Positions 12,568 through 59,850 of a DNA stretch of 64,000 nt are shown piece by piece (position 1 is the first letter of the stretch; each line of letters opens with the position of its first letter). Made by a program: the position numbers and the translations under genes. The DNA lies in contig RQSC01001393.1 in the NCBI GenBank assembly GCA_013416795.1, positions 99,721 to 163,720 on the forward strand, read 5' to 3'. A model generated the notes under the pieces. That model worked only from the letters and a program-made list of their open reading frames with translations, did not search any database and was not told the origin of the DNA. The DNA comes from Prasinococcaceae sp. CCMP 1430 (lineage: Eukaryota; Plantae; Prasinodermophyta).

Positions 12568-14191
12568 CGCGCTTGGGCAGCAGCAGCTTCACTACCACAA
12601 GCAACAGCACCGTCCGCACAGCCAGCACGAACAGGTGTACGGCCACGCCGAGCACGCCGCGCCGTACGACGCTCGCCAGTCGCACGCGCGCGCACACCGC
12701 GGCCACGCCCACTCCCAGGCCCGCTCGCGTTCGCGCCTGAGCACGTCAGGCGCTGGCATCGCCGACAAGGGTCGCATGGGCGAGCGCGGCGCGCCAGTGA
12801 ATGAGCTGAGCGCCCAATTGCCGGGCTACAAGATCGGCATGTCGATCGGCGAGGGCGGGTTCTGCACGGTCCGCGCCGGGGTGCATCGGCTCACGGGTGC
12901 GGCGGTTGCGGTCAAGGTGTACGACAAGCGCCGACTTGGCGACCCGGCAGACCGCCGTCGTGTGGGCCGCGAGATTCGCGTGCTGAAGCGCCTCGCGTCG
13001 CCGCGCGTCATCCAGTTGCTCGAGGTTGTAGACGCGCCCTCCCGCATGTTCATGGTGATGGAGCGCGCGGCTAATGGCAGCCTGCTAGACTACGTGCGCT
13101 CCCGCAAGCGCCTCGATGAGCCCACGGCGCGCAAGTTCTTTTGCCAGGCGGTCGCAGGCATCGAGTACTGCCACAGGCACCTCGTTGTGCACAGGGACAT
13201 CAAGCTTGAAAACCTGCTGCTCGACGAGAACGACAATCTGCGTCTCATTGACTTCGGCCTGGCAGCCATCCTGCCCCCGGGCCCTCCGAAGAAGCTCAAG
13301 GTGCACTGCGGCAGTCCCTCCTACGCCGCGCCCGAGATCGTCGGAAGGACCCTGTACGACGGCCCTCCGGTTGACGTGTGGTCTCTCGGCGTCGTGACCT
13401 TCGCAATGCTCGCTGGGTACTTGCCCTTTCACGCACGCAACAACAAGCAAGAGCTGTGCCAAAAGATCATGCGCGGCGCCTTCACGCTGCCGGACTTCAT
13501 CTCTCGCGACGCAGCGGATTTGCTGAAGCGCATGCTGACCGTTGACCCCAGCCAGCGCATCACCGTCGGTGGGCTGTGGTCGCACCCGTGGGTCTCGGGG
13601 AGGGACGCAGGTGGCCTGAGCGAGGGTGCGGCGGCCTCGTATGGGGGCGACGCGCGTGGCGCGCGGCCCGGGACGGCTACCGCGGTCATGATGCGAGGCT
13701 CTGCGGCCGATGCGCGCGCGCTCGGATACGGCAGCGGGTGGGCTGGCCTGAGCAGCGGGCTCGGGGCCGAGCCTCGCGACTCGGACGGCACACCACAGGC
13801 CTTGCCAAGCCACGCAGATGCCATTGCAAACGAGGCCCTCGACGAGGACCTCATCCGTGCGCTGGAGGGCTTCGGCTACGAGCGAGGAGCAATCGTGGGC
13901 GCGGTCTCATCGGGCGAGCACAACTACCTCACGGCAAGCTACTGGCTCATGCAGCAGGCGCGCCGGAGGAGCGAAGCGGTCAAGTCGTGGGCGGCGGACG
14001 GGACGCAAGCCCCCTCGGCAGCAATGTCATCTGGCGGTGGCGTCTGTCGCCCAGCGTCGGCGCCCCACGCCGCCGCATCGGCGTCCGCACCGGGAGCAGT
14101 GGCAGAGTCGAGCCGAACGCCTGCATCGGCCGCCGCGGGCCCGCAGTGCGCCGCCGCACACGTGCGCAGCAGGGCCGCGTGGGGCTCGTAG
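11723..14191 (+). CDS. SNF1/AMPK-related (MARK/BRSK-like) Ser/Thr kinase with a polyQ-rich N-terminus and UBA-like domain
   Basis: IGEGGF, VAVKVY, HRDIKLEN, DFG, CGSPSYAAPE, DVWSLGV motifs; UBA-like region LDEDLIRALEGFGYER...LTASYWL; several CAG tracts; single exon. Confidence 0.9.
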
Positions 14192-33142: not shown

Positions 33143-33354
33143 NNNNNNNNNNNNNNNNNNNNNNNNNNNNNNNNNNNNNNNNNNNNNNNNNNNNNNNNNN
33201 NNNNNNNNNNNNNNNNNNNNNNNNNNNNNNNNNNNNNNNNNNNNNNNNNNNNNNNNNNNNNNNNNNNNNNNNNNNNNNNNNNNNNNNNNNNNNNNNNNNN
33301 NNNNNNNNNNNNNNNNNNNNNNNNNNNNNNNNNNNNNNNNNNNNNNNNNNNNNN
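33143..33354. other. Assembly gap (N run)
   Basis: 212 n; hides the last SERF exon and the 5' end of the large membrane-protein gene. Confidence 1.
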
Positions 33355-35344: not shown

Positions 35345-36176
35345 NNNNNNNNNNNNNNNNNNNNNNNNNNNNNNNNNNNNNNNNNNNNNNNNNNNNNNNN
35401 NNNNNNNNNNNNNNNNNNNNNNNNNNNNNNNNNNNNNNNNNNNNNNNNNNNNNNNNNNNNNNNNNNNNNNNNNNNNNNNNNNNNNNNNNNNNNNNNNNNN
35501 NNNNNNNNNNNNNNNNNNNNNNNNNNNNNNNNNNNNNNNNNNNNNNNNNNNNNNNNNNNNNNNNNNNNNNNNNNNNNNNNNNNNNNNNNNNNNNNNNNNN
35601 NNNNNNNNNNNNNNNNNNNNNNNNNNNNNNNNNNNNNNNNNNNNNNNNNNNNNNNNNNNNNNNNNNNNNNNNNNNNNNNNNNNNNNNNNNNNNNNNNNNN
35701 NNNNNNNNNNNNNNNNNNNNNNNNNNNNNNNNNNNNNNNNNNNNNNNNNNNNNNNNNNNNNNNNNNNNNNNNNNNNNNNNNNNNNNNNNNNNNNNNNNNN
35801 NNNNNNNNNNNNNNNNNNNNNNNNNNNNNNNNNNNNNNNNNNNNNNNNNNNNNNNNNNNNNNNNNNNNNNNNNNNNNNNNNNNNNNNNNNNNNNNNNNNN
35901 NNNNNNNNNNNNNNNNNNNNNNNNNNNNNNNNNNNNNNNNNNNNNNNNNNNNNNNNNNNNNNNNNNNNNNNNNNNNNNNNNNNNNNNNNNNNNNNNNNNN
36001 NNNNNNNNNNNNNNNNNNNNNNNNNNNNNNNNNNNNNNNNNNNNNNNNNNNNNNNNNNNNNNNNNNNNNNNNNNNNNNNNNNNNNNNNNNNNNNNNNNNN
36101 NNNNNNNNNNNNNNNNNNNNNNNNNNNNNNNNNNNNNNNNNNNNNNNNNNNNNNNNNNNNNNNNNNNNNNNNNNNN
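35345..36176. other. Assembly gap (N run)
   Basis: 832 n; probably hides the first exon of the Alfin-like gene. Confidence 1.
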
Positions 36177-52460: not shown

Positions 52461-53165
52461 GCCTCGTACGGACGTGGCCCGACGCCGCCGCGCCACGCCA
52501 GCCGGTGCAGCCACGCCTCCCACCGAAGGGGTGTATGGTATGGAGCGTGCCCTCGGGCGTCGTAATTCCCGTAAAATGCATTCGGCAATGTCGTTGATAC
52601 TGTCGCGGAGGAATTTCACCCGCCGCGAATTCAACCACGCGCCGCCGAAGCACCCGCCCATCGAAATGCCTTCCGTCGTTACGAAAACGCGCTTCGCGTC
52701 CCAAATTCGAGGGACACATCCCGCGATGATGCACCCATTTGTAGGTACAATAAAACGGTATCATTGCCGGCGAACGCGTGGAAAGGGCGCGCGCCTCGCG
52801 GATCGCGCGCGCCGAACCGCACCGTTTTTATTTATTTTATTTTTATTTGTAATTATTTTATTTTTCCGCGCGGCGCGCGGGACCGACGGCGGGGATCGCG
52901 CCGCGCGCGGATTCCATCGGTTTTTGGTGGATTCCATTCTGGTTTGCGGGTGGAATTCAGATTAAGTAGAACGTTAAGTGGATTCCATATAAAGGTTTTG
53001 GGTTGGGGATTGGGCGAATTGGGTTCCGGCGCGCGCGCGCGGGTGGGCGGGCGGGCGGGGGGGGAGGGGGAGGGAGGGAGGGCGTGCCACACGTCGCGCG
53101 AGGCGCCTCGCGCTCGTACCCCTCTCGTCCCCCCCCCGGGCCTTGCCCCCTCGCGGCCTGCGTTG

Positions 53166-55433
53166 ATGTTGGCGCGCTCGCTCAAGGCGGTGGCACTCGG
53201 CGCGGCGGCGGCGACGTCGCGCGGCGGCGGAGCCGCGCAGCAGGGGCAGCGGCAGGCCCACCAGCGGCGGGCCGCGATGTGCTCGGCGGCCGTCGAGGCG
53301 GCGCCCGCGCTCGAGGGCAACGTGCTCGCGGCGTACGGCGCGGCGTCGGCGTCGGCGCAGCTGCCGCCCTTCGACAAGATCGAGGCCGACCAGGTCGTGC
53401 CGGCGATCTCCGCGCTGATCGACCAGCTGCAGGCGGAGCTCGAGGCGCTCGAGGCGAGCGTGGGCGAGGACGGCTCGGGCTGCCAGAAGTGGGAGGATCT
53501 GGCCGCGCCGCTCGAGACGCTCGGCGACCGGCTGGGGCGCGCGTGGGGCGCCGTCAACCACCTGAAGATGGTGAAGGACAGCGAGGCGCTGCGCACCGCC
53601 GTCGACGAGGTGCAGCCGCGCAACGTGGAGTTCGGCCTGCGCGTGGCGCAGTCCGAGCCGCTCTACCGCGCCTTCCGCGCCATGAAGGACGACTCGGCGC
53701 GCTACGAGGCGCTCACCGAGGCGCAGCGCCGCATCGTCGACTCGGAGATCCTCAGCGCCGAGCTCAGCGGCGTCGCGCTCACCGGCGAGGCCAAGGAGGA
53801 GTTCAACAAGCTGCAGCAGGAGAGCGCCAAGCTGAGCACCAAGTTCTCCAACAACGTGCTCGACAGCACCAAGGCCTTCGAGAAGTTCATCGAGGACAAG
53901 GCGCTGGTGGAGGGCCTGCCCGAGAGCGCCCTGGCGCTCGCCGCGCAGACCGCCGCAAGCAAGGGGCGCGAGGGCGCCACCGCCGAGGCCGGGCCGTGGT
54001 GCATCACGCTCGACTTTCCGTCGTACATGCCCGTCATGCAGCACGCCACCAACCGCGAGCTGCGCGAGGAGGTCTACCGCGCGTTCATCGCGCGCGCGTC
54101 GTCCGGCGAGGTCGACAACGGCCCCATCATCGAGCGCACGCTCGAGATCCGCAAGCGCAAGGCCGAGCTGCTCGGCTTCGGCCACTTCGCGGACGTGAGC
54201 ATGTCGCAGAAGATGGCCGACCTCGACTCGGCGCTGACGCTGCTCGAGGAGCTGCGCGCGGCGGCGTACGAACCGGGCGTCAAGGAGCTCGAGGACGTGC
54301 GCGCGTTCGCCAAGGAGTCCGGCGTCGACTACGAGCTCGAGCACCACGACATGACCTTCTGGGCGGAGCGCCTGCGCGAGGAGCGCTACGCGTACAAGGA
54401 GGAGGACCTGCGGCCGTACTTCTCCCTGCCGGCCGTGCTGGACGGCCTCTTCGGCCTCATCAACAGGCTGTTCGGCGTGACGATCGTCGCCGCCGACGGC
54501 GAGGCGCCCGTGTGGAACCCGGACGTGCGCTTCTTCAAGGTGATGGGCGAGGACGGCAACCAGCGCGCGTCGTTCTACCTCGACCCCTACAGCCGCCCCG
54601 CCGAGAAGCGCGGCGGCGCGTGGATGGACGAGGTGGTCGGCCGCAGCGCGCTGCTGGGCGAGGGCGGCGCCACGCGCCTCCCCACCGCGCACATGGTGTG
54701 CAACCAGTCGCCCCCCGTCGGCGACAAGCCCTCGCTGATGACCGTGAGGGAGGTGGAGACGCTCTTCCACGAGATGGGCCACGCGCTGCAGCACATGCTC
54801 ACCACGCAGCCCGAGGGCATGGTGGCGGGCATCCGCGGCGTCGAGTGGGACACCGTCGAGCTCCCCTCGCAGTACATGGAGAACTGGTTCTACGACAAGA
54901 AGACCTGCATGGCCTTCGCCAAGCACTACGAGACTGGCGAGCAGCTGCCCGAGGAGCTCTTTGACAAGGTCGTCGCGGCGCGCAAGTACCGCGCGGGCAC
55001 CATGATGCTGCGCCAGGTGCACTTCTCGGTGACCGACCTCAAGCTCCACTCGGACTACGTCCCGGGCTCGGAGGGCGGCGTCTTCGCGATGGAGAAGGAG
55101 ATCGCCAAGACGACGTCGGTCCTGCCGCCGCTGGAGGAGGACCGCTTCCTCTGCGGCTTCTCGCACATCTTCGCGGGCGGCTACTCCGCGGGCTACTTCA
55201 GCTACAAGTGGGCGGAGGTGCTCTCCGCGGACGCCTTCGGCGCGTTCGAGGAGGTCGGCCTCGAGAACGAGGAGGCGGTCAAGGAGACCGGCCGTCGCTT
55301 CGCCGACACCATCCTCGCGATGGGCGGCGGGCGCGACCCCAACCTCGTCTACCAGGACTTCCGCGGGCGCGGCCCCTCCACGGAGGCGCTGCTCAGGCAC
55401 TCGGGGCTCGCGCCGGCCACCGCCACCGCGTAG
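53166..55433 (+). CDS. OOP: Organellar oligopeptidase A (M3A, PrlC/OpdA-like) with transit peptide
   Basis: LPPFDKI, FYLDPYSRPAEKRGGAWMD, zinc motif TLFHEMGHALQH, VELPSQYMENW, FSHIFAGGYSAGYFSYKWAEVLSADAF; Ala/Arg-rich presequence; single exon. Confidence 0.95.
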   Translation: MLARSLKAVALGAAAATSRGGGAAQQGQRQAHQRRAAMCSAAVEAAPALEGNVLAAYGAASASAQLPPFDKIEADQVVPAISALIDQLQAELEALEASVGEDGSGCQKWEDLAAPLETLGDRLGRAWGAVNHLKMVKDSEALRTAVDEVQPRNVEFGLRVAQSEPLYRAFRAMKDDSARYEALTEAQRRIVDSEILSAELSGVALTGEAKEEFNKLQQESAKLSTKFSNNVLDSTKAFEKFIEDKALVEGLPESALALAAQTAASKGREGATAEAGPWCITLDFPSYMPVMQHATNRELREEVYRAFIARASSGEVDNGPIIERTLEIRKRKAELLGFGHFADVSMSQKMADLDSALTLLEELRAAAYEPGVKELEDVRAFAKESGVDYELEHHDMTFWAERLREERYAYKEEDLRPYFSLPAVLDGLFGLINRLFGVTIVAADGEAPVWNPDVRFFKVMGEDGNQRASFYLDPYSRPAEKRGGAWMDEVVGRSALLGEGGATRLPTAHMVCNQSPPVGDKPSLMTVREVETLFHEMGHALQHMLTTQPEGMVAGIRGVEWDTVELPSQYMENWFYDKKTCMAFAKHYETGEQLPEELFDKVVAARKYRAGTMMLRQVHFSVTDLKLHSDYVPGSEGGVFAMEKEIAKTTSVLPPLEEDRFLCGFSHIFAGGYSAGYFSYKWAEVLSADAFGAFEEVGLENEEAVKETGRRFADTILAMGGGRDPNLVYQDFRGRGPSTEALLRHSGLAPATATA

Positions 55434-55787
55434 GCGGCGCCCGCGCGCGGCCGCGGCCGGAACGGACGCGTCGCCGCGGCAGTAACAGTCGTCGGCGTGT
55501 CTGTGCGCGCGCCTCGGGCACAGCGCTAGGTGTGTGTGTGTGTGCGCGCGCACGTGTGCGCGCACGTGTGTGTGCGCGCGCGTGTGTGTGCGTCTGTGCG
55601 TGCGTGTGTGTGCGTGCGGGGGTGCGGGCGCTCACGAGCGCGACGTCGCGTTCGGGTTACTACCTTTGAGGTCGGGACTTTTCCAGGGTTGTAACGCGTT
55701 CCCCCGCGCGCCGCGCGGCCGCGCCACGTGGCGCACCGGCGGCGCGCACGGGTGGGTATTGCGCGGGCGTGGCAGCATTAGTTGTTT

Positions 55788-55957
55788 GGTGTGGTGTGGT
55801 GTGGTGTGGTGTGGTGTGGTGTGGTGGTGTGTGGTGTGGTGTGGTGTGGTGTAGTGTGGTGTGGTGTGGTGTGGTGTGGTGGTGTGTGGTGTGGTGCTGT
55901 GTGTGGTGTGGTGTGGTGTGGTGTGGTGTGGTGTGGTGTGGTGGTGTGTGGTGTGGT
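55788..55957. repeat. (GTGTG)n pentanucleotide microsatellite
   Basis: ~170 bp of GGTGT units with a few interruptions. Confidence 0.97.
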
Positions 55958-56260
55958 GACTCCGCGCCAATTTCGAGCCGGCGGGGCCGCGCCGCGGGAG
56001 GGGGGGGAGGGAGGGGCGCGCCGCGCACCTTCCCGCCGCCGCGCCGCCCCTTTCCCCCCCCCCTCTTCTCCGCTCCCCCTCTCGATCGCTCGCCTCCCAG
56101 GAGGGGGCGGGCCTCGCCGCCGCGCAGCGCTGCGGGTGGGCGGATGGGCGGCGCGTGTGGGGCGGGGTGGGGCGGGGTGGGACGGTCAGGTAGAGGCGAG
56201 AGGGGTGGCGGCTTCGCCGCAGGGGAGAGCCCAGCCCCGTCTCCTCCCGTCGCCTCCGCG

Positions 56261-57007
56261 CACGCCGTGTGCGCGGGGGCGCGCTCGGGCAGCGCCGCGA
56301 CGCTCGCCGAGGTCGCCGACGGCCGCGCGCTGCTCGTGGAGAAGTCCTTCGACACCTGAGGCCACTGCCGCGCCGTCGCGCCCGAGTACAAGGCCTTCGT
56401 CGCCGCGCACCACGACGAGCTCTCGGACGCCGTCGGCTTCGCCACGGTGCTGGCGGGCAACTCGCGCGGCTGCGAGGCCTTCAAGGCCATCGGCGGCGTG
56501 GACGTGCCCGAGGGCGCGGTGACGTACCTCGACGACACGCGGAGCGGAGGCGCGTTCAAGGACTGGTTCGGACTGACGCGCCCACAGTTCGTGCTGCTGG
56601 CGCCCAACGGCACCATCCTGGACCTCGCGCCGAGCACGAGCTGCGGGCAGTGCGGACAGTGGAGCGACGCGCGGTACGCGAGACTGCTCGGTGAGGTGGC
56701 GGCGGAGGTGCGCGCCGCGCGCGGAGAGGCGGTGGCGGCGACCCCGCCGCCCCCAACCCCGCTGGCTGGCGCGCCCAACGACGACGAGGACACCACAGTA
56801 GCATCGAAGGAGGCGGCTGAGAAGGAGAAGTCGAGGAAGAAGAAGTCGAGGAAGACCAAGAAGTCGAAGAAGCTGAAGAAGTCGAAGAAGCTCTCGAAGA
56901 AGGCGGCCAAGGCGCTGTGCAAGGGTCTCAAGAAGAAGGCGTGCTCCAAGGGAGACGCCAAGAGGCACTGCAAGTACAAGAAAAAGCGGGGCTGCGCGCC
57001 CAGGTAG
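56261..57007 (+). CDS. Thioredoxin-fold (redoxin-like) selenoprotein with a UGHC active site and Lys/Cys-rich tail; start unresolved
   Basis: LLVEKSFDT-TGA(56357-56359)-GHCRAVAPEYK continues in the same frame to TAG 57007. cis-Pro loop TRPQFVLL; SECIS in the 3' UTR. Confidence 0.85.
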
Positions 57008-57192
57008 CGCCCCCACGCATGCACGCGCGCACGCGCGCACGCGCGCACGCACGCACGATGCACGCGAACGTCCACACCCCTGCCCACATCCGCATCCACG
57101 CCCGCGCTCGTCCCAACAGCCATGCCCAAGCCCAGGCCCAACACACTCACAAGCACATGCGCAAGTCTCTGAGGAGGCCGCTCTTCGCCACA

Positions 57193-57266
57193 CCCACACG
57201 CATGACGGCGCGCGGCACAAGCTGGCACGTCAGCGCCACCGCCGCGCCGCCCGACGCCCGCGTGGG
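57193..57266 (+). promoter_or_regulatory. SECIS element (type II)
   Basis: Helix I CCCACACGC/GCGTGGG; core ATGAC (57202-06)/CGAC (57252-55); 10-bp helix II GGCGCGCGGC/GCCGCGCCGCC with one bulge; unpaired AA 57219-20; apical mini-stem GCTGG-cacg-TCAGC. Confidence 0.85.
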
Positions 57267-57402
57267 CAAGCGAGGGGTCATCCGCGACCGCGCGTGGACG
57301 CACGCACCGAGTAAGCTGTCGCAGTTGAAATCTTACAAGTCAATCCCAGAGCACATGTGAATGGGCGCGAGAAAGAGAGCGAAGGAGCGCAGCCGCGCAG
57401 CG

Positions 57403-59160
57403 CTACGCGGCCGGGCACGCGGCCTCCTCACCACCACGCGTGTCGGCTGCGCCGTCTCCCCGCTCGCCGTGGGCGCCGTCCTCGTCGGCAGCCGCCAGCG
57501 CGGCATCCGCGTCGAAGCCCCCGCCGCGCCACAGCACACGCCCCACCGTCGTGGCAAAGTACGCCATCTCCGCGAGTGTCCAATTGGCATCGTTGTGGCG
57601 GCCGCTGTGGCGGTGGCCGCACTCGGGGTCGAACGCGCCCCCACCAGGCACCTCGGCCTCGCACGCGACGTACAGCGCTCGCAGCTCCCGCAGCAGCGGC
57701 AGCGCGAGGTGCGCACCCACGCACGAGCGCGGGCCCGCGCCGAAGATGCTCCACGCGTACGGCTCGGCGCCGGCGCCTATCCCCGTGCCCCCCCACGGCC
57801 CCTTGGCCGTCCCCGCGCCGCCACCCGCCTGCGCCGCCTCCGCCGCCTCGGCCGCCCGTGCGAGGTCAGAGGCGAATATGACCACCTGCGCGGGCGCTTT
57901 TACCACCACCTTGCCGTCAAGAACCACGTCCTCCGTCACGCGGCGCTCGAGGATTGGGAAGGGGTGCGCGCGCCGCACGGCAGCCTCCAGCGACACGTGC
58001 GGGCCCGCACGCTTAATCGCCACGGCGATGTCGCCCGCGTTGATCGCCGGCGACAACAGCACGGGCTGCAGCAGCACGCTGTAGCGGCGAGGATTGCGCC
58101 AACCCTCGCCATGGCGCGCCCACAGCACCGCGTGCGAGCGCAGCAGGTCGTCCACCAGCACGCGCACCGCCGCGTCCTTGAGCCGCGCGTCGGCGCGGCC
58201 GCGCACGGCGATCTCCCTGCGCCACTCCCACGAGGCCGTCAACAGCGGCTCGAAGGCCTCCTCCCAAGCGCGCCCGAAAATGCACTCGACGTACGTCGCC
58301 AGCGACAGCCGCGCGACGTCGTCGGCGACGACCCGGCTGTTCTCGCCGCCTCTCTTCACGCGCGCGAGCAGCTGCTCGCAGTTGCGCCGCGCGACGGCCG
58401 CCACGTTGGCAGGCGTGAGGCCGGGGAGGTCGCGCACCAGCGCGTGGAAGTCTGCGATGAGCGCCGCGTGCAGCGGCCCGTCGACGCTCTCGAGCGACAG
58501 CACCGGTTGCCACGCGGGCGACGCCACGTTTCGCTCGAGCAGGTCGCCCTTGTCGGCGCTCGCGCGCAGCACGGCGAAGGCCTCGCGCGCGCCGCGCACG
58601 CTGACCACGCGCTCGCCGCGCAGAGCGCCGAAGGCGGCAAACAGCAGCCCCCGCACGAGGTCGTCGCCGCACAGCGCGCGGAAGTCGAAGAGGCCGCGCT
58701 TGTGCGCCGTGATGAGCGCGTTGGCTGCGCGGTACGCAAAGCACGTCATCAGGTCCACCTGCACCACCGCGAGCTCGCGCGGCGTGATACCACCCGGCAG
58801 CGCCAGCATCGCCAGCAGGCTCGACAGCTCGAAGCTGTAGCGGTGGCGGAAGAAGGCGAGGTGCTCCAGGCGCGCATCGCCGAGCTCGCACACCGCCTGC
58901 GAGAGCGCCAGCACGGCGAGGATGCGCCCGTAGCCCGCGAGCACCTCCTTCGCACCGGAGAGCGCCACCACGCCCGCGGCGAGCGCGCCGACGAAGGCGA
59001 GCACCGCGCGCCACTCGAGCGTGTCGAGCTTGCCCGCGACGAGGTCGCCCGCCATCGTCTTGGCGAGGTACGCGGCGCACGCGTGCGGCATGACCAGGTC
59101 GTCGGCCAGCACGGCGACCGCCGCGACCGCCAGGCCCGCCACGTTGGCCGCACGGCTCAT
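57403..59160 (-). CDS. Divergent cytochrome P450 with a hydrophobic N-terminal extension; start uncertain
   Basis: Heme-thiolate motif FGAGPRSCVG; K-helix region EAAVRRAHPFPILER. Coding-like sequence continues upstream of ATG 59160 to about 59245. Confidence 0.8.
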   Translation of the reverse strand: MSRAANVAGLAVAAVAVLADDLVMPHACAAYLAKTMAGDLVAGKLDTLEWRAVLAFVGALAAGVVALSGAKEVLAGYGRILAVLALSQAVCELGDARLEHLAFFRHRYSFELSSLLAMLALPGGITPRELAVVQVDLMTCFAYRAANALITAHKRGLFDFRALCGDDLVRGLLFAAFGALRGERVVSVRGAREAFAVLRASADKGDLLERNVASPAWQPVLSLESVDGPLHAALIADFHALVRDLPGLTPANVAAVARRNCEQLLARVKRGGENSRVVADDVARLSLATYVECIFGRAWEEAFEPLLTASWEWRREIAVRGRADARLKDAAVRVLVDDLLRSHAVLWARHGEGWRNPRRYSVLLQPVLLSPAINAGDIAVAIKRAGPHVSLEAAVRRAHPFPILERRVTEDVVLDGKVVVKAPAQVVIFASDLARAAEAAEAAQAGGGAGTAKGPWGGTGIGAGAEPYAWSIFGAGPRSCVGAHLALPLLRELRALYVACEAEVPGGGAFDPECGHRHSGRHNDANWTLAEMAYFATTVGRVLWRGGGFDADAALAAADEDGAHGERGDGAADTRGGEEAACPAA

Positions 59161-59250
59161 CGCCTCCACGTTCACCGCCGCGCCCACGGAGCCGATGTAC
59201 AGGTGCCCCACCCAGCGCAGCGAGCGCGCGTAGCCGCCGAGGCCGCCGCG

Positions 59251-59506: not shown

Positions 59507-59850
59507 NGGCGCGCGCGCGCGCGCGCTGTGGCGCCCGCGCCAGTCCCCCCTCCGCCCCCAAGCTGGAGAGCGAACCCAGAGGAGCGATGGAGCGCGCGCG
59601 CCCCGGCCTTCCTCCCCTCCCCCCACCCCTGGCCCCCCCTGCACCTGTGCACCCTCCCCCCGCCGGCGCGCGCACGTGCGGCTGCCGCGCGGCCCCGCAG
59701 CCGCGGCGAATCCACCCATCCTACCATCAACTCACTCACACATCAAATCTGGATTCCATTTTAGGGACTCAACGCGCACAAAAGAATGGAATCCATGGAA
59801 TCCATCACCCCCCGGCCCTCATCCGCCCGGGCGGGCCGCCGCGGGGCCGC

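Follow-up and report, generated by a model that had tools for sequence, protein, structure and literature searches.

The window analyzed here is a stretch of 64,000 nucleotides (nt) on contig RQSC01001393.1 of Prasinococcaceae sp. CCMP 1430, and it contains a candidate selenoprotein gene of the thioredoxin-fold type whose features are collected in Table 1. The gene carries a TGA (56357-56359) in the frame of position 56261, where the context reads ...ALLVEKSFDT-TGA-GHCRAVAPEY; the frame translates as ...AVCAGARSGSAATLAEVADGRALLVEKSFDT, TGA, and then GHCRAVAPEYKAF.... Beyond the TGA, it stays open for 215 codons and ends at a TAG (57005-57007). A preliminary description of this DNA had proposed that the TGA is a selenocysteine (Sec, U) codon in the U-x-x-C motif of a thioredoxin fold, followed by a coding frame with a TRPQF loop, a Lys/Cys-rich tail, and a type II Sec insertion sequence (SECIS) element past the real stop codon. 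The long frame, the loop, and the tail with its four Cys residues were recovered, and the proposals for the TGA and the SECIS element were borne out by the comparisons reported below. The DNA around the locus has a GC content of about 70%, and codon-position GC served as a check that is independent of homology. In one frame, the GC content at third codon positions (GC3) was 1.00 in 56263-56356, 0.95 in 56360-56700, and 0.90 in the tail, and it was lower in the neighboring segments (0.74 in 56144-56262 and 0.66 in the 3′ untranslated region [UTR]). Because this periodicity continues across the TGA, the same frame is taken to be coding on both sides of it.

Table 1. Features of the candidate selenoprotein locus in window coordinates (A6, member alignment; AF2, AlphaFold2; CDS, coding sequence; SNP, single-nucleotide polymorphism)
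Feature	Position	Strand	Basis or remarks
Doubtful 5′ segment	56144..56262	+	In-frame ATG; Gly/Arg-rich, nonperiodic, without signal peptide
Pre-Sec coding segment AVCAGARSGSAATLAEVADGRALLVEKSFDT	56263..56356	+	Conserved Cys and strand leading into the active site
TGA, predicted Sec, residue 1 of U-G-H-C	56357..56359	+	TGA at the same column in relatives
Remainder of the thioredoxin-like domain	56360..56700	+	Alignment A6, AF2 model, synonymous SNPs
Putative resolving Cys	56366-56368	+	Within U-G-H-C
Invariant Cys	56471-56473	+	Alignment A6
W-F-G-x-x-R-P-Q loop	RPQ 56579-56587; TRPQF 56576-56590	+	Alignment A6
CGQCG	56642-56656	+	Translation, alignment A6
Pro-rich/acidic linker, then polybasic four-Cys tail and TAG	56701..57007	+	Translation; GC3 0.90
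Lys/Cys-rich tail	~56830-57004	+	Translation
3′ UTR before the SECIS element	57008..57192	+	(CACG/CGCG)n low-complexity run at ~57010-57065; RNA contigs enter from the CDS
Type II SECIS element	57193..57266	+	Fold, pattern, conservation in L002

The in-frame TGA is conserved among relatives

The post-TGA domain was used as the query in an exhaustive phmmer search of 1.84 billion representative proteins. Fourteen matches were returned; 11 were true relatives, and the other three (P0006, P0010, and P0013) were rejected as unrelated repeat proteins. A profile search added five further clusters. In almost all gene calls of the relatives, the start was placed at the Met or Val that first follows the TGA position, as the preliminary description had anticipated in suggesting that gene callers would truncate the gene. 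The DNA of nine independent relatives from marine metagenomes and protist transcriptomes (30 to 60% identity) was read upstream in frame; in all nine, a TGA occupied the same column, flanked on either side by conserved sequence. The in-frame TGA occupies this one alignment column in 10 loci at 30 to 99% identity, the carriers being L001, L002 to L004, L005, and L008 to L013. The context is KSFDT-U-GHC in the window and in L001, a TARA metagenome scaffold, KSYDT-U-GQC in L002 to L004, KSYTT-U-PLC with an intron next in L005, KSYET-U-PGC in L008, KSFHT-U-PGC in L009, KSSYT-U-GRC in L010, KSAYT-U-GTC in L012, and Q-U-PHC with an intron immediately upstream in L011 and L013.

When the members were aligned across the TGA, with the Sec position entered as X, a block of the form F-x-x-C-x-G...TL...G-x-A-L-h-h-[ED]-K-S-[FY]-x-T was found to be kept before the TGA in seven aligned members; a looser form (aromatic-x-x-C-x-G ... 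T/S-L ... A-L-h-h-[ED]-K-S) holds for all members with that exon. Alignment A6 has invariant columns at C38, D59, F70, G71, R74, P75, Q76, P91, C95, C98, and G99. Compared with its 59%-identical orthologue L002, the window has 76% identity over the 90 nt preceding the TGA and only the random level, 21%, over the next 90 nt upstream. Relative to L001, the thioredoxin-like domain of the window has three synonymous and no nonsynonymous SNPs. In L010 and L012, which come from JGI samples resembling culture transcriptomes, one unbroken frame begins with an ATG and a signal peptide, includes the TGA, and ends in a hydrophobic C terminus. The sole named relative is NCBI CYMTET_18213 (P0003) from the green alga Cymbomonas tetramitiformis. 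Its gene model fuses ...SSADREIPF to PCRAMAPKF and omits about 35 residues, the part in which relatives have the conserved Cys, the strand, and the Sec codon, a gap that is most likely a false intron made to evade the in-frame TGA. Two scans of JGI metagenomes added no relative; all matches were attributable to chance, 107 of them in a pattern scan and 2 with a degenerate DNA pattern for WFGxTRPQF.

A type II SECIS element follows the stop codon

SECIS candidates were judged by an AUGA/GA quartet, a helix II of 9 to 13 bp, an unpaired AA, and an apical loop or mini-stem, and all of these were found by pattern and by fold at 57202-57254. The core comprises AUGA at 57202-57205, 195 nt past the stop codon, and GA at 57253-57254. 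Helix II consists of 10 bp and contains one bulged C, the unpaired ACAA places its AA at 57219-57220 (13 nt from the core), and a 4-bp apical mini-stem makes the element type II. Helix I, at 57193-57200/57259-57266, is formed by CCCAC/GUGGG. The background of the ATGA-type pattern was 3 sites in 128 kb (both strands of the window). A minus-strand pattern match at about 59160 was rejected since its ATGA belongs to the start codon region of a cytochrome P450-like gene. The folding z-score of the element was -1.3, an unremarkable value because the DNA has about 70% GC.

The element forms a conserved island in the 3′ UTRs of the window and L002, which otherwise do not align. Its 5′ strand, ATGACGGCGCGCGGC-N-CAAG, is identical at 19 of 20 nt between the two, and its 3′ strand, CCGCCGCGC-N-GCCCGA, is identical at 15 of 16 nt, the single change turning a G-C into a G-U pair. 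The apical stem and helix I are paired in both sequences through different bases (UGGC/GCCA in the window and GGUGCA/UGCACC in L002 for the former; CCCAC/GUGGG and GCUCGC/GCGAGC, respectively, for the latter). Relative to L001, which is 99.2% identical, three SNPs were counted in the UTR on each side of the element, and the element itself is free of them. SECIS-like elements were also observed in the UTRs of the remaining members. A pattern scan identified elements of the same geometry in L008, L011, L012, and L013, and that of L008 also matched Rfam SECIS_1 with 31.8 bits (E 0.004), slightly below the gathering score of 35. A covariance model (R1) built from L008 and L012 found the L010 element, which lacks the AA, at an E value of 3e-5; in this narrow leave-out test, the elements of L011, L013, and the window were not above noise. 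The contig of L009 ends within ATGACGGCGGAGCC..., which resembles the beginning of the window element. Alignment of six SECIS elements with MAFFT and RNAalifold misaligned them by sequence and gave no usable consensus. The best match of an ad hoc SECIS model in the window (13055-13107, plus strand; 13.7 bits, E 0.08) starts with GUGA and has GC in place of the 3′ GA, and it was rejected as a SECIS element.

RNA contigs connect the TGA, the stop codon, and the SECIS element

The locus is present in marine metatranscriptome runs. Contig X1 record 1 (1,462 nt) maps to 56316-57785 and differs from the window at 14 positions, all of them outside 56357-56359; a TGC or TGG in reads, which would have spoken against a Sec codon, was not seen there. 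X5 record 23 (56964-57195) bridges the stop codon, and X2 record 15 (57075-57799) covers the SECIS element. The RNA is contiguous from 56316 through the TGA and the stop codon into the SECIS element, which speaks against the concern that the latter might lie outside the transcript. The contigs are unstranded and the P450-like gene converges on the locus, so that they show the contiguity of CDS, UTR, and SECIS element and not the strand. The RNA sequences were also expected to locate a 5′ exon, but no contig in the metatranscriptomes reached upstream of 56316.

The predicted fold resembles bacterial thiol-disulfide oxidoreductases

The 113 residues following Sec were modeled with AF2 from a 13-member alignment with locus-derived pieces covering helix 1; the strand before Sec was not included. 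The model (predicted local distance difference test [pLDDT] score, 77; predicted template modeling score, 0.75) has the topology helix-strand-helix-strand-helix-strand-strand-helix. An earlier model from a shallow alignment was discarded (pLDDT, 61; weak matches). All leading matches in PDB and AFDB were thioredoxin-fold proteins, and the model supports assignment to the thioredoxin-like fold class. The best likeness was to the bacterial TlpA/ResA/CcmG(DsbE)/DsbF/StoA group (VIA Z of 5.3 to 6.2 and root mean square deviation [rmsd] of 2.7 to 3.0 Å over 93 to 96 residues), with DsbF of M. tuberculosis first (Z 6.2), followed by ResA (Z 5.7 to 5.8; rmsd, 2.8 to 3.0 Å) and CcmG (Z 5.3). Foldseek placed StoA and DsbE at template modeling (TM) scores of 0.56 to 0.58 (DsbE 1lu4, 0.58).

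Residue 1 of the model, directly after Sec, superposes on ResA 74/75, CcmG 81, and human PGFS 45; the active-site numbering (ResA C74/C77 and PGFS C44/C47) was taken from entry titles. This register would put Sec on the first, nucleophilic Cys and the window Cys on the second. R-P-Q is invariant in 13 members and directly precedes the strand pair E76-80/E86-89 of the model, and it can be read as the cis-Pro loop facing the active site. The second Cys motif, which the preliminary description had singled out as CGQC, is present within CGQCG. Its spacing varies among relatives (C-x2-C, C-x3-C, or C-x6-C), which makes a structural disulfide more likely than a second redox centre. The chemistry is probably disulfide exchange rather than peroxide reduction.

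Relatives are built like cell surface proteins

Hydrophobic signal peptides are present in the three members with complete 5′ ends (L009, L010, and L012). Most members carry a Ser/Thr/Pro-rich stalk and a hydrophobic extreme C terminus, the layout of a glycosylphosphatidylinositol (GPI)-anchored protein. The tail of the window protein and of L002 is instead polybasic and includes four Cys residues whose spacing is similar in the two. Given the signal peptide at the start of the relatives and the stalk and GPI-like C terminus at their end, the family is most likely a secreted thiol-disulfide oxidoreductase tethered to the cell surface, and both tail types may be devices that keep the enzyme there.

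Very probably, then, the locus is a eukaryotic selenoprotein gene in which UGA 56357 is read as Sec by means of the type II SECIS element and which belongs to a small family of putative surface oxidoreductases resembling TlpA, ResA, and CcmG. TGA 56357 itself almost certainly codes for Sec, its insertion being deduced from sequence comparison. The ribosome would read the UGA as Sec under the direction of the element in the 3′ UTR, and Sec would replace the exposed N-terminal nucleophilic Cys of C-x-x-C. The Cys three residues past Sec would resolve the reaction intermediate as a selenenylsulfide, with the R-P-Q loop acting as the cis-Pro loop opposite the active site. In the window lineage, the polybasic four-Cys tail would replace the anchor and could hold the enzyme on an anionic cell surface.

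The 5′ end of the window copy

Upstream of the gene, (GT/GC)n-like low-complexity DNA and a (TGTGG)n microsatellite occupy 55530-55640 and 55780-55960, followed by G-rich/C-rich tracts at 55975-56260; repeats and tracts of this type, here adjoining 56262/56263, are the kind of DNA where assemblies break. Coding periodicity begins abruptly at 56263, and there is no AG at the junction 56262/56263. The sole ATG in 55400-56262 lies in frame at 56144. The segment from this ATG to 56262 is Gly/Arg-rich (GC at codon positions 1/2/3 of 0.75/0.82/0.74), and the first 20 residues have a mean hydropathy of -0.51, whereas the signal peptides of homologues score +1.2 to +1.4. A codon periodicity scan of 52500-56262 detected the upstream M3 peptidase gene only and no further exon-like stretch; the signal peptide and 5′ exon that had been looked for were not found in the window. 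Exact look-ups of the window open reading frame (ORF) and of P0003 returned no record.

L001 matches window 56263-59243 over 2,981 nt without gaps at 99.16% identity and is unrelated to the window at both ends, for 85 nt and 268 nt. The breaks fall inside the selenoprotein CDS and some 80 nt before the start of the P450 gene, as would result either from structural variation among strains or from chimerism of the scaffold. In the upstream 85 nt of L001, which are in frame, every third position is G or C. The L001 flanks had no blastn match in the window, and a protein search with the 59-amino-acid (aa) upstream piece of L001 found no match. In L002, an intron acceptor lies 12 nt before the homologous Cys codon. 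The window copy has an unrecognized intron, a 5′ truncation in the strain, or an assembly misjoin.

Alternative explanations

Several observations weigh against the selenoprotein reading or parts of it. Upstream of 56263, the window copy shows neither a recognizable start nor a signal peptide or splice acceptor, and no tRNA gene was found in the window. Rfam SECIS_1 had no match on 56900-57500 at E≤10, R1, built from two distant members, scored the window element at 7.9 bits, within noise, and metatranscriptome contig X2 has a G>A change at 57246 that opens one helix II pair. The fold matches are moderate (Z of about 6, below 8; Foldseek E of about 0.005 to 0.03). No Pfam family matched the window pieces even weakly (E≤10), although the pieces were searched apart, which lowers sensitivity, and the family profile had no match among PDB sequences. 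Homologues with Cys aligned to the TGA, which the preliminary description had counted on as a check, were absent from the phmmer and profile searches. Because the family appears to exist solely in the Sec form, with Sec obligatory, this usual support is missing and the Sec reading is not contradicted. One opposing account would make the TGA an ordinary stop codon, treat the open frames around it as a dead gene or unrelated high-GC noise, and explain the stem-loop as a chance GC-rich hairpin. Long open frames in all six frames of such DNA, the unexceptional folding energy, and the Rfam result agree with it. Yet the TGA column and its conserved flanks recur across diverged lineages, in 10 loci, and some of these are spliced transcripts with an ATG and a signal peptide at one end and a C-terminal anchor at the other. 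In addition, the GC3 periodicity crosses the TGA in a single frame, L002 shares the SECIS island, and other members have SECIS-like elements in their UTRs. The conserved island with its compensatory changes outweighs the failures of the generic models because the window helices are unusually GC-rich. We consider an ordinary stop codon extremely improbable.

Two other accounts retain Sec decoding. The family may be real and the window copy truncated at its 5′ end, because it is a structural variant or a partial duplicate or was misjoined during assembly of GC-rich, low-complexity DNA, so that it would give no secreted enzyme and at best a product from ATG 56144 without signal peptide. This is somewhat unlikely in our judgment. 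It fits the abrupt onset of periodicity at a junction without AG, the absence from the window of the in-frame 85 nt upstream in L001, the Gly/Arg-rich, nonhydrophobic N terminus where homologues have signal peptides, and the lack of an exon-like stretch before the M3 peptidase gene, which ends about 830 nt away. However, the retained part differs from L001 only by synonymous changes in the domain and leaves the SECIS element untouched, L001 loses its similarity to the window at either end in the manner of a chimeric metagenome scaffold, and a DNA run from the same organism, though possibly the assembly's own sample, has a contig that is exact over 56187-56283 and so spans the junction. The account is further weakened by the L002 acceptor 12 nt before the same Cys codon, which makes an intron here plausible, with a first exon that perhaps went unrecognized. 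The remaining account keeps the gene and makes its product a peroxidase of the peroxiredoxin/AhpC kind, with Sec as the peroxidatic and the nearby Cys as the resolving residue. Prx5, AhpE, Tpx, and AhpC are among the fold matches (Z 4.8 to 5.6), the nearest named clusters in language-model features are AhpC-TSA/Redoxin (0.89 to 0.92), Thr immediately precedes Sec in nearly all members, and a Pfam search of eight homologue pieces gave a single weak match, to AhpC-TSA_2 (E 0.055), and nothing else. The top structural matches and best superpositions, in contrast, are ResA, DsbF, CcmG, StoA, and DsbE, although a fold match alone does not separate the two chemistries. Peroxiredoxins carry the motif P-x-x-x-T-x-x-C, and thiol-disulfide oxidoreductases are of the C-x-x-C type; the strict U-x-x-C of the family is of the latter kind. 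We regard a peroxidase as unlikely and retain the reading as a thiol-disulfide oxidoreductase.

Neighboring genes and assembly quality

An M3-family zinc oligopeptidase gene with the motif HEMGHALQH and strong codon periodicity lies at 53238-55421 on the plus strand, ending about 830 nt before the selenoprotein exon. An 863-aa minus-strand ORF over the same DNA is high-GC noise. The cytochrome P450-like gene (57403-59163, minus strand; haem-binding motif FGAGPRSCVG) converges on the selenoprotein gene, and their 3′ UTRs may overlap because the stop codons are about 400 nt apart. The P450 ORF as listed (778 aa) is probably overextended, with a hydrophobic N terminus from a Met near 59163. The window contains nine single Ns (one at 59507) and runs of N at 33143-33354 and 35345-36176, so the assembly has gaps and uncertain bases.

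Relation to known selenoproteins and significance

Thioredoxin-fold selenoproteins with U-x-x-C motifs, decoded via SECIS elements in the 3′ UTR, are well established in algae (PMC2375036, PMC7539508), and the mechanism proposed here is an unsurprising instance of this well-known kind. With the bacterial TlpA/ResA/CcmG group, the family shares the active-site register, with Sec on the first Cys of C-x-x-C, a Pro-containing loop before the last strand pair, and a position outside the cytoplasm, which here is deduced. There is no detectable sequence homology (no match to Pfam AhpC-TSA, Redoxin, or Thioredoxin_8 and no bacterial relative in phmmer). Unlike that group, the family is eukaryotic, uses Sec in place of Cys, and has a GPI-like or polybasic tail in addition to its signal peptide; its extra conserved Cys residues comprise one upstream of the motif, another in helix 2, and those of C-G-Q-C-G. 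The preliminary description had also likened the motif to the CGHC of protein disulfide isomerase (PDI). Algal PDI-type selenoproteins of Ostreococcus and Thalassiosira do carry U-G-H-C, aligned as UGHCK in the supplement, and the motif is fixed in PDI, with a Trp before it (APWCGHCK in the Cys-form rows) (PMC2375036). U-G-H-C, a location in the secretory pathway (predicted for the present family), and a eukaryotic SECIS element are common to both. In the family studied here, however, the middle residues vary (GH, GQ, PG, PL, GR, GT, and PH), Thr rather than Trp precedes Sec, the protein has a single domain, unlike the multidomain a-b-b′-a′ layout of PDI, and no KDEL-type end for retention in the endoplasmic reticulum, and Pfam Thioredoxin (PF00085) does not match. 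Because the two middle residues vary freely within the family, the likeness to PDI is coincidental.

The motif strings TRPQ, VRPQ, ARPQ, RPQF, RPQY, CGQCG, and CGSCG are absent from the 113,000-character sequence supplement of the Ostreococcus, Thalassiosira, and Dictyostelium catalogue (PMC2375036), and a literature search found no paper containing the family's motif strings. In the algal catalogue of 2020, the families "TlpA" (thioredoxin-like) and "Hypo" occur to about 80% in the Sec form, and TlpA is reported with a hemerythrin domain (PMC7539508), which the window protein lacks; this comparison was made by description only. The SECIS-first searches behind the algal catalogues could have caught this gene. 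Elsewhere, Gobler et al. (2011/2013) reportedly counted 59 selenoproteins in Aureococcus, some of them novel. The sequence evidence does not by itself point to a green alga; the GC content of 70% and the occurrence in marine metatranscriptomes would suggest a pelagophyte-like organism, and if the genome were that of Aureococcus or a near relation, the gene might already be among these 59. That the gene belongs to a new family, as the preliminary description had suggested, is plausible. Tentatively, it can be seen as a member of an uncatalogued, Sec-only family of extracellular, surface-tethered enzymes in marine protists, including pelagophyte-like lineages, the prasinophyte Cymbomonas, and several cultured protists, without Cys-containing relatives in present sequence space and with anchoring by a GPI-like or polybasic four-Cys tail.

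The family has no Pfam model and is systematically misannotated, with all public entries cut at or spliced around the Sec codon, and it provides a concrete case for adding a Sec-aware profile to annotation. The absence of a Cys form from the search results is unusual among selenoprotein families, and the resemblance of the relatives to cell surface enzymes is part of the value of the finding. For algal ecology, the gene would represent another selenium-dependent enzyme in a high-GC marine alga of a kind known to need selenium for growth. If the tentative assignment to a Sec-only surface family is true, a surface selenoenzyme in which Sec is not replaceable by Cys would couple the selenium needs of bloom-forming algae to a redox reaction outside the cell.

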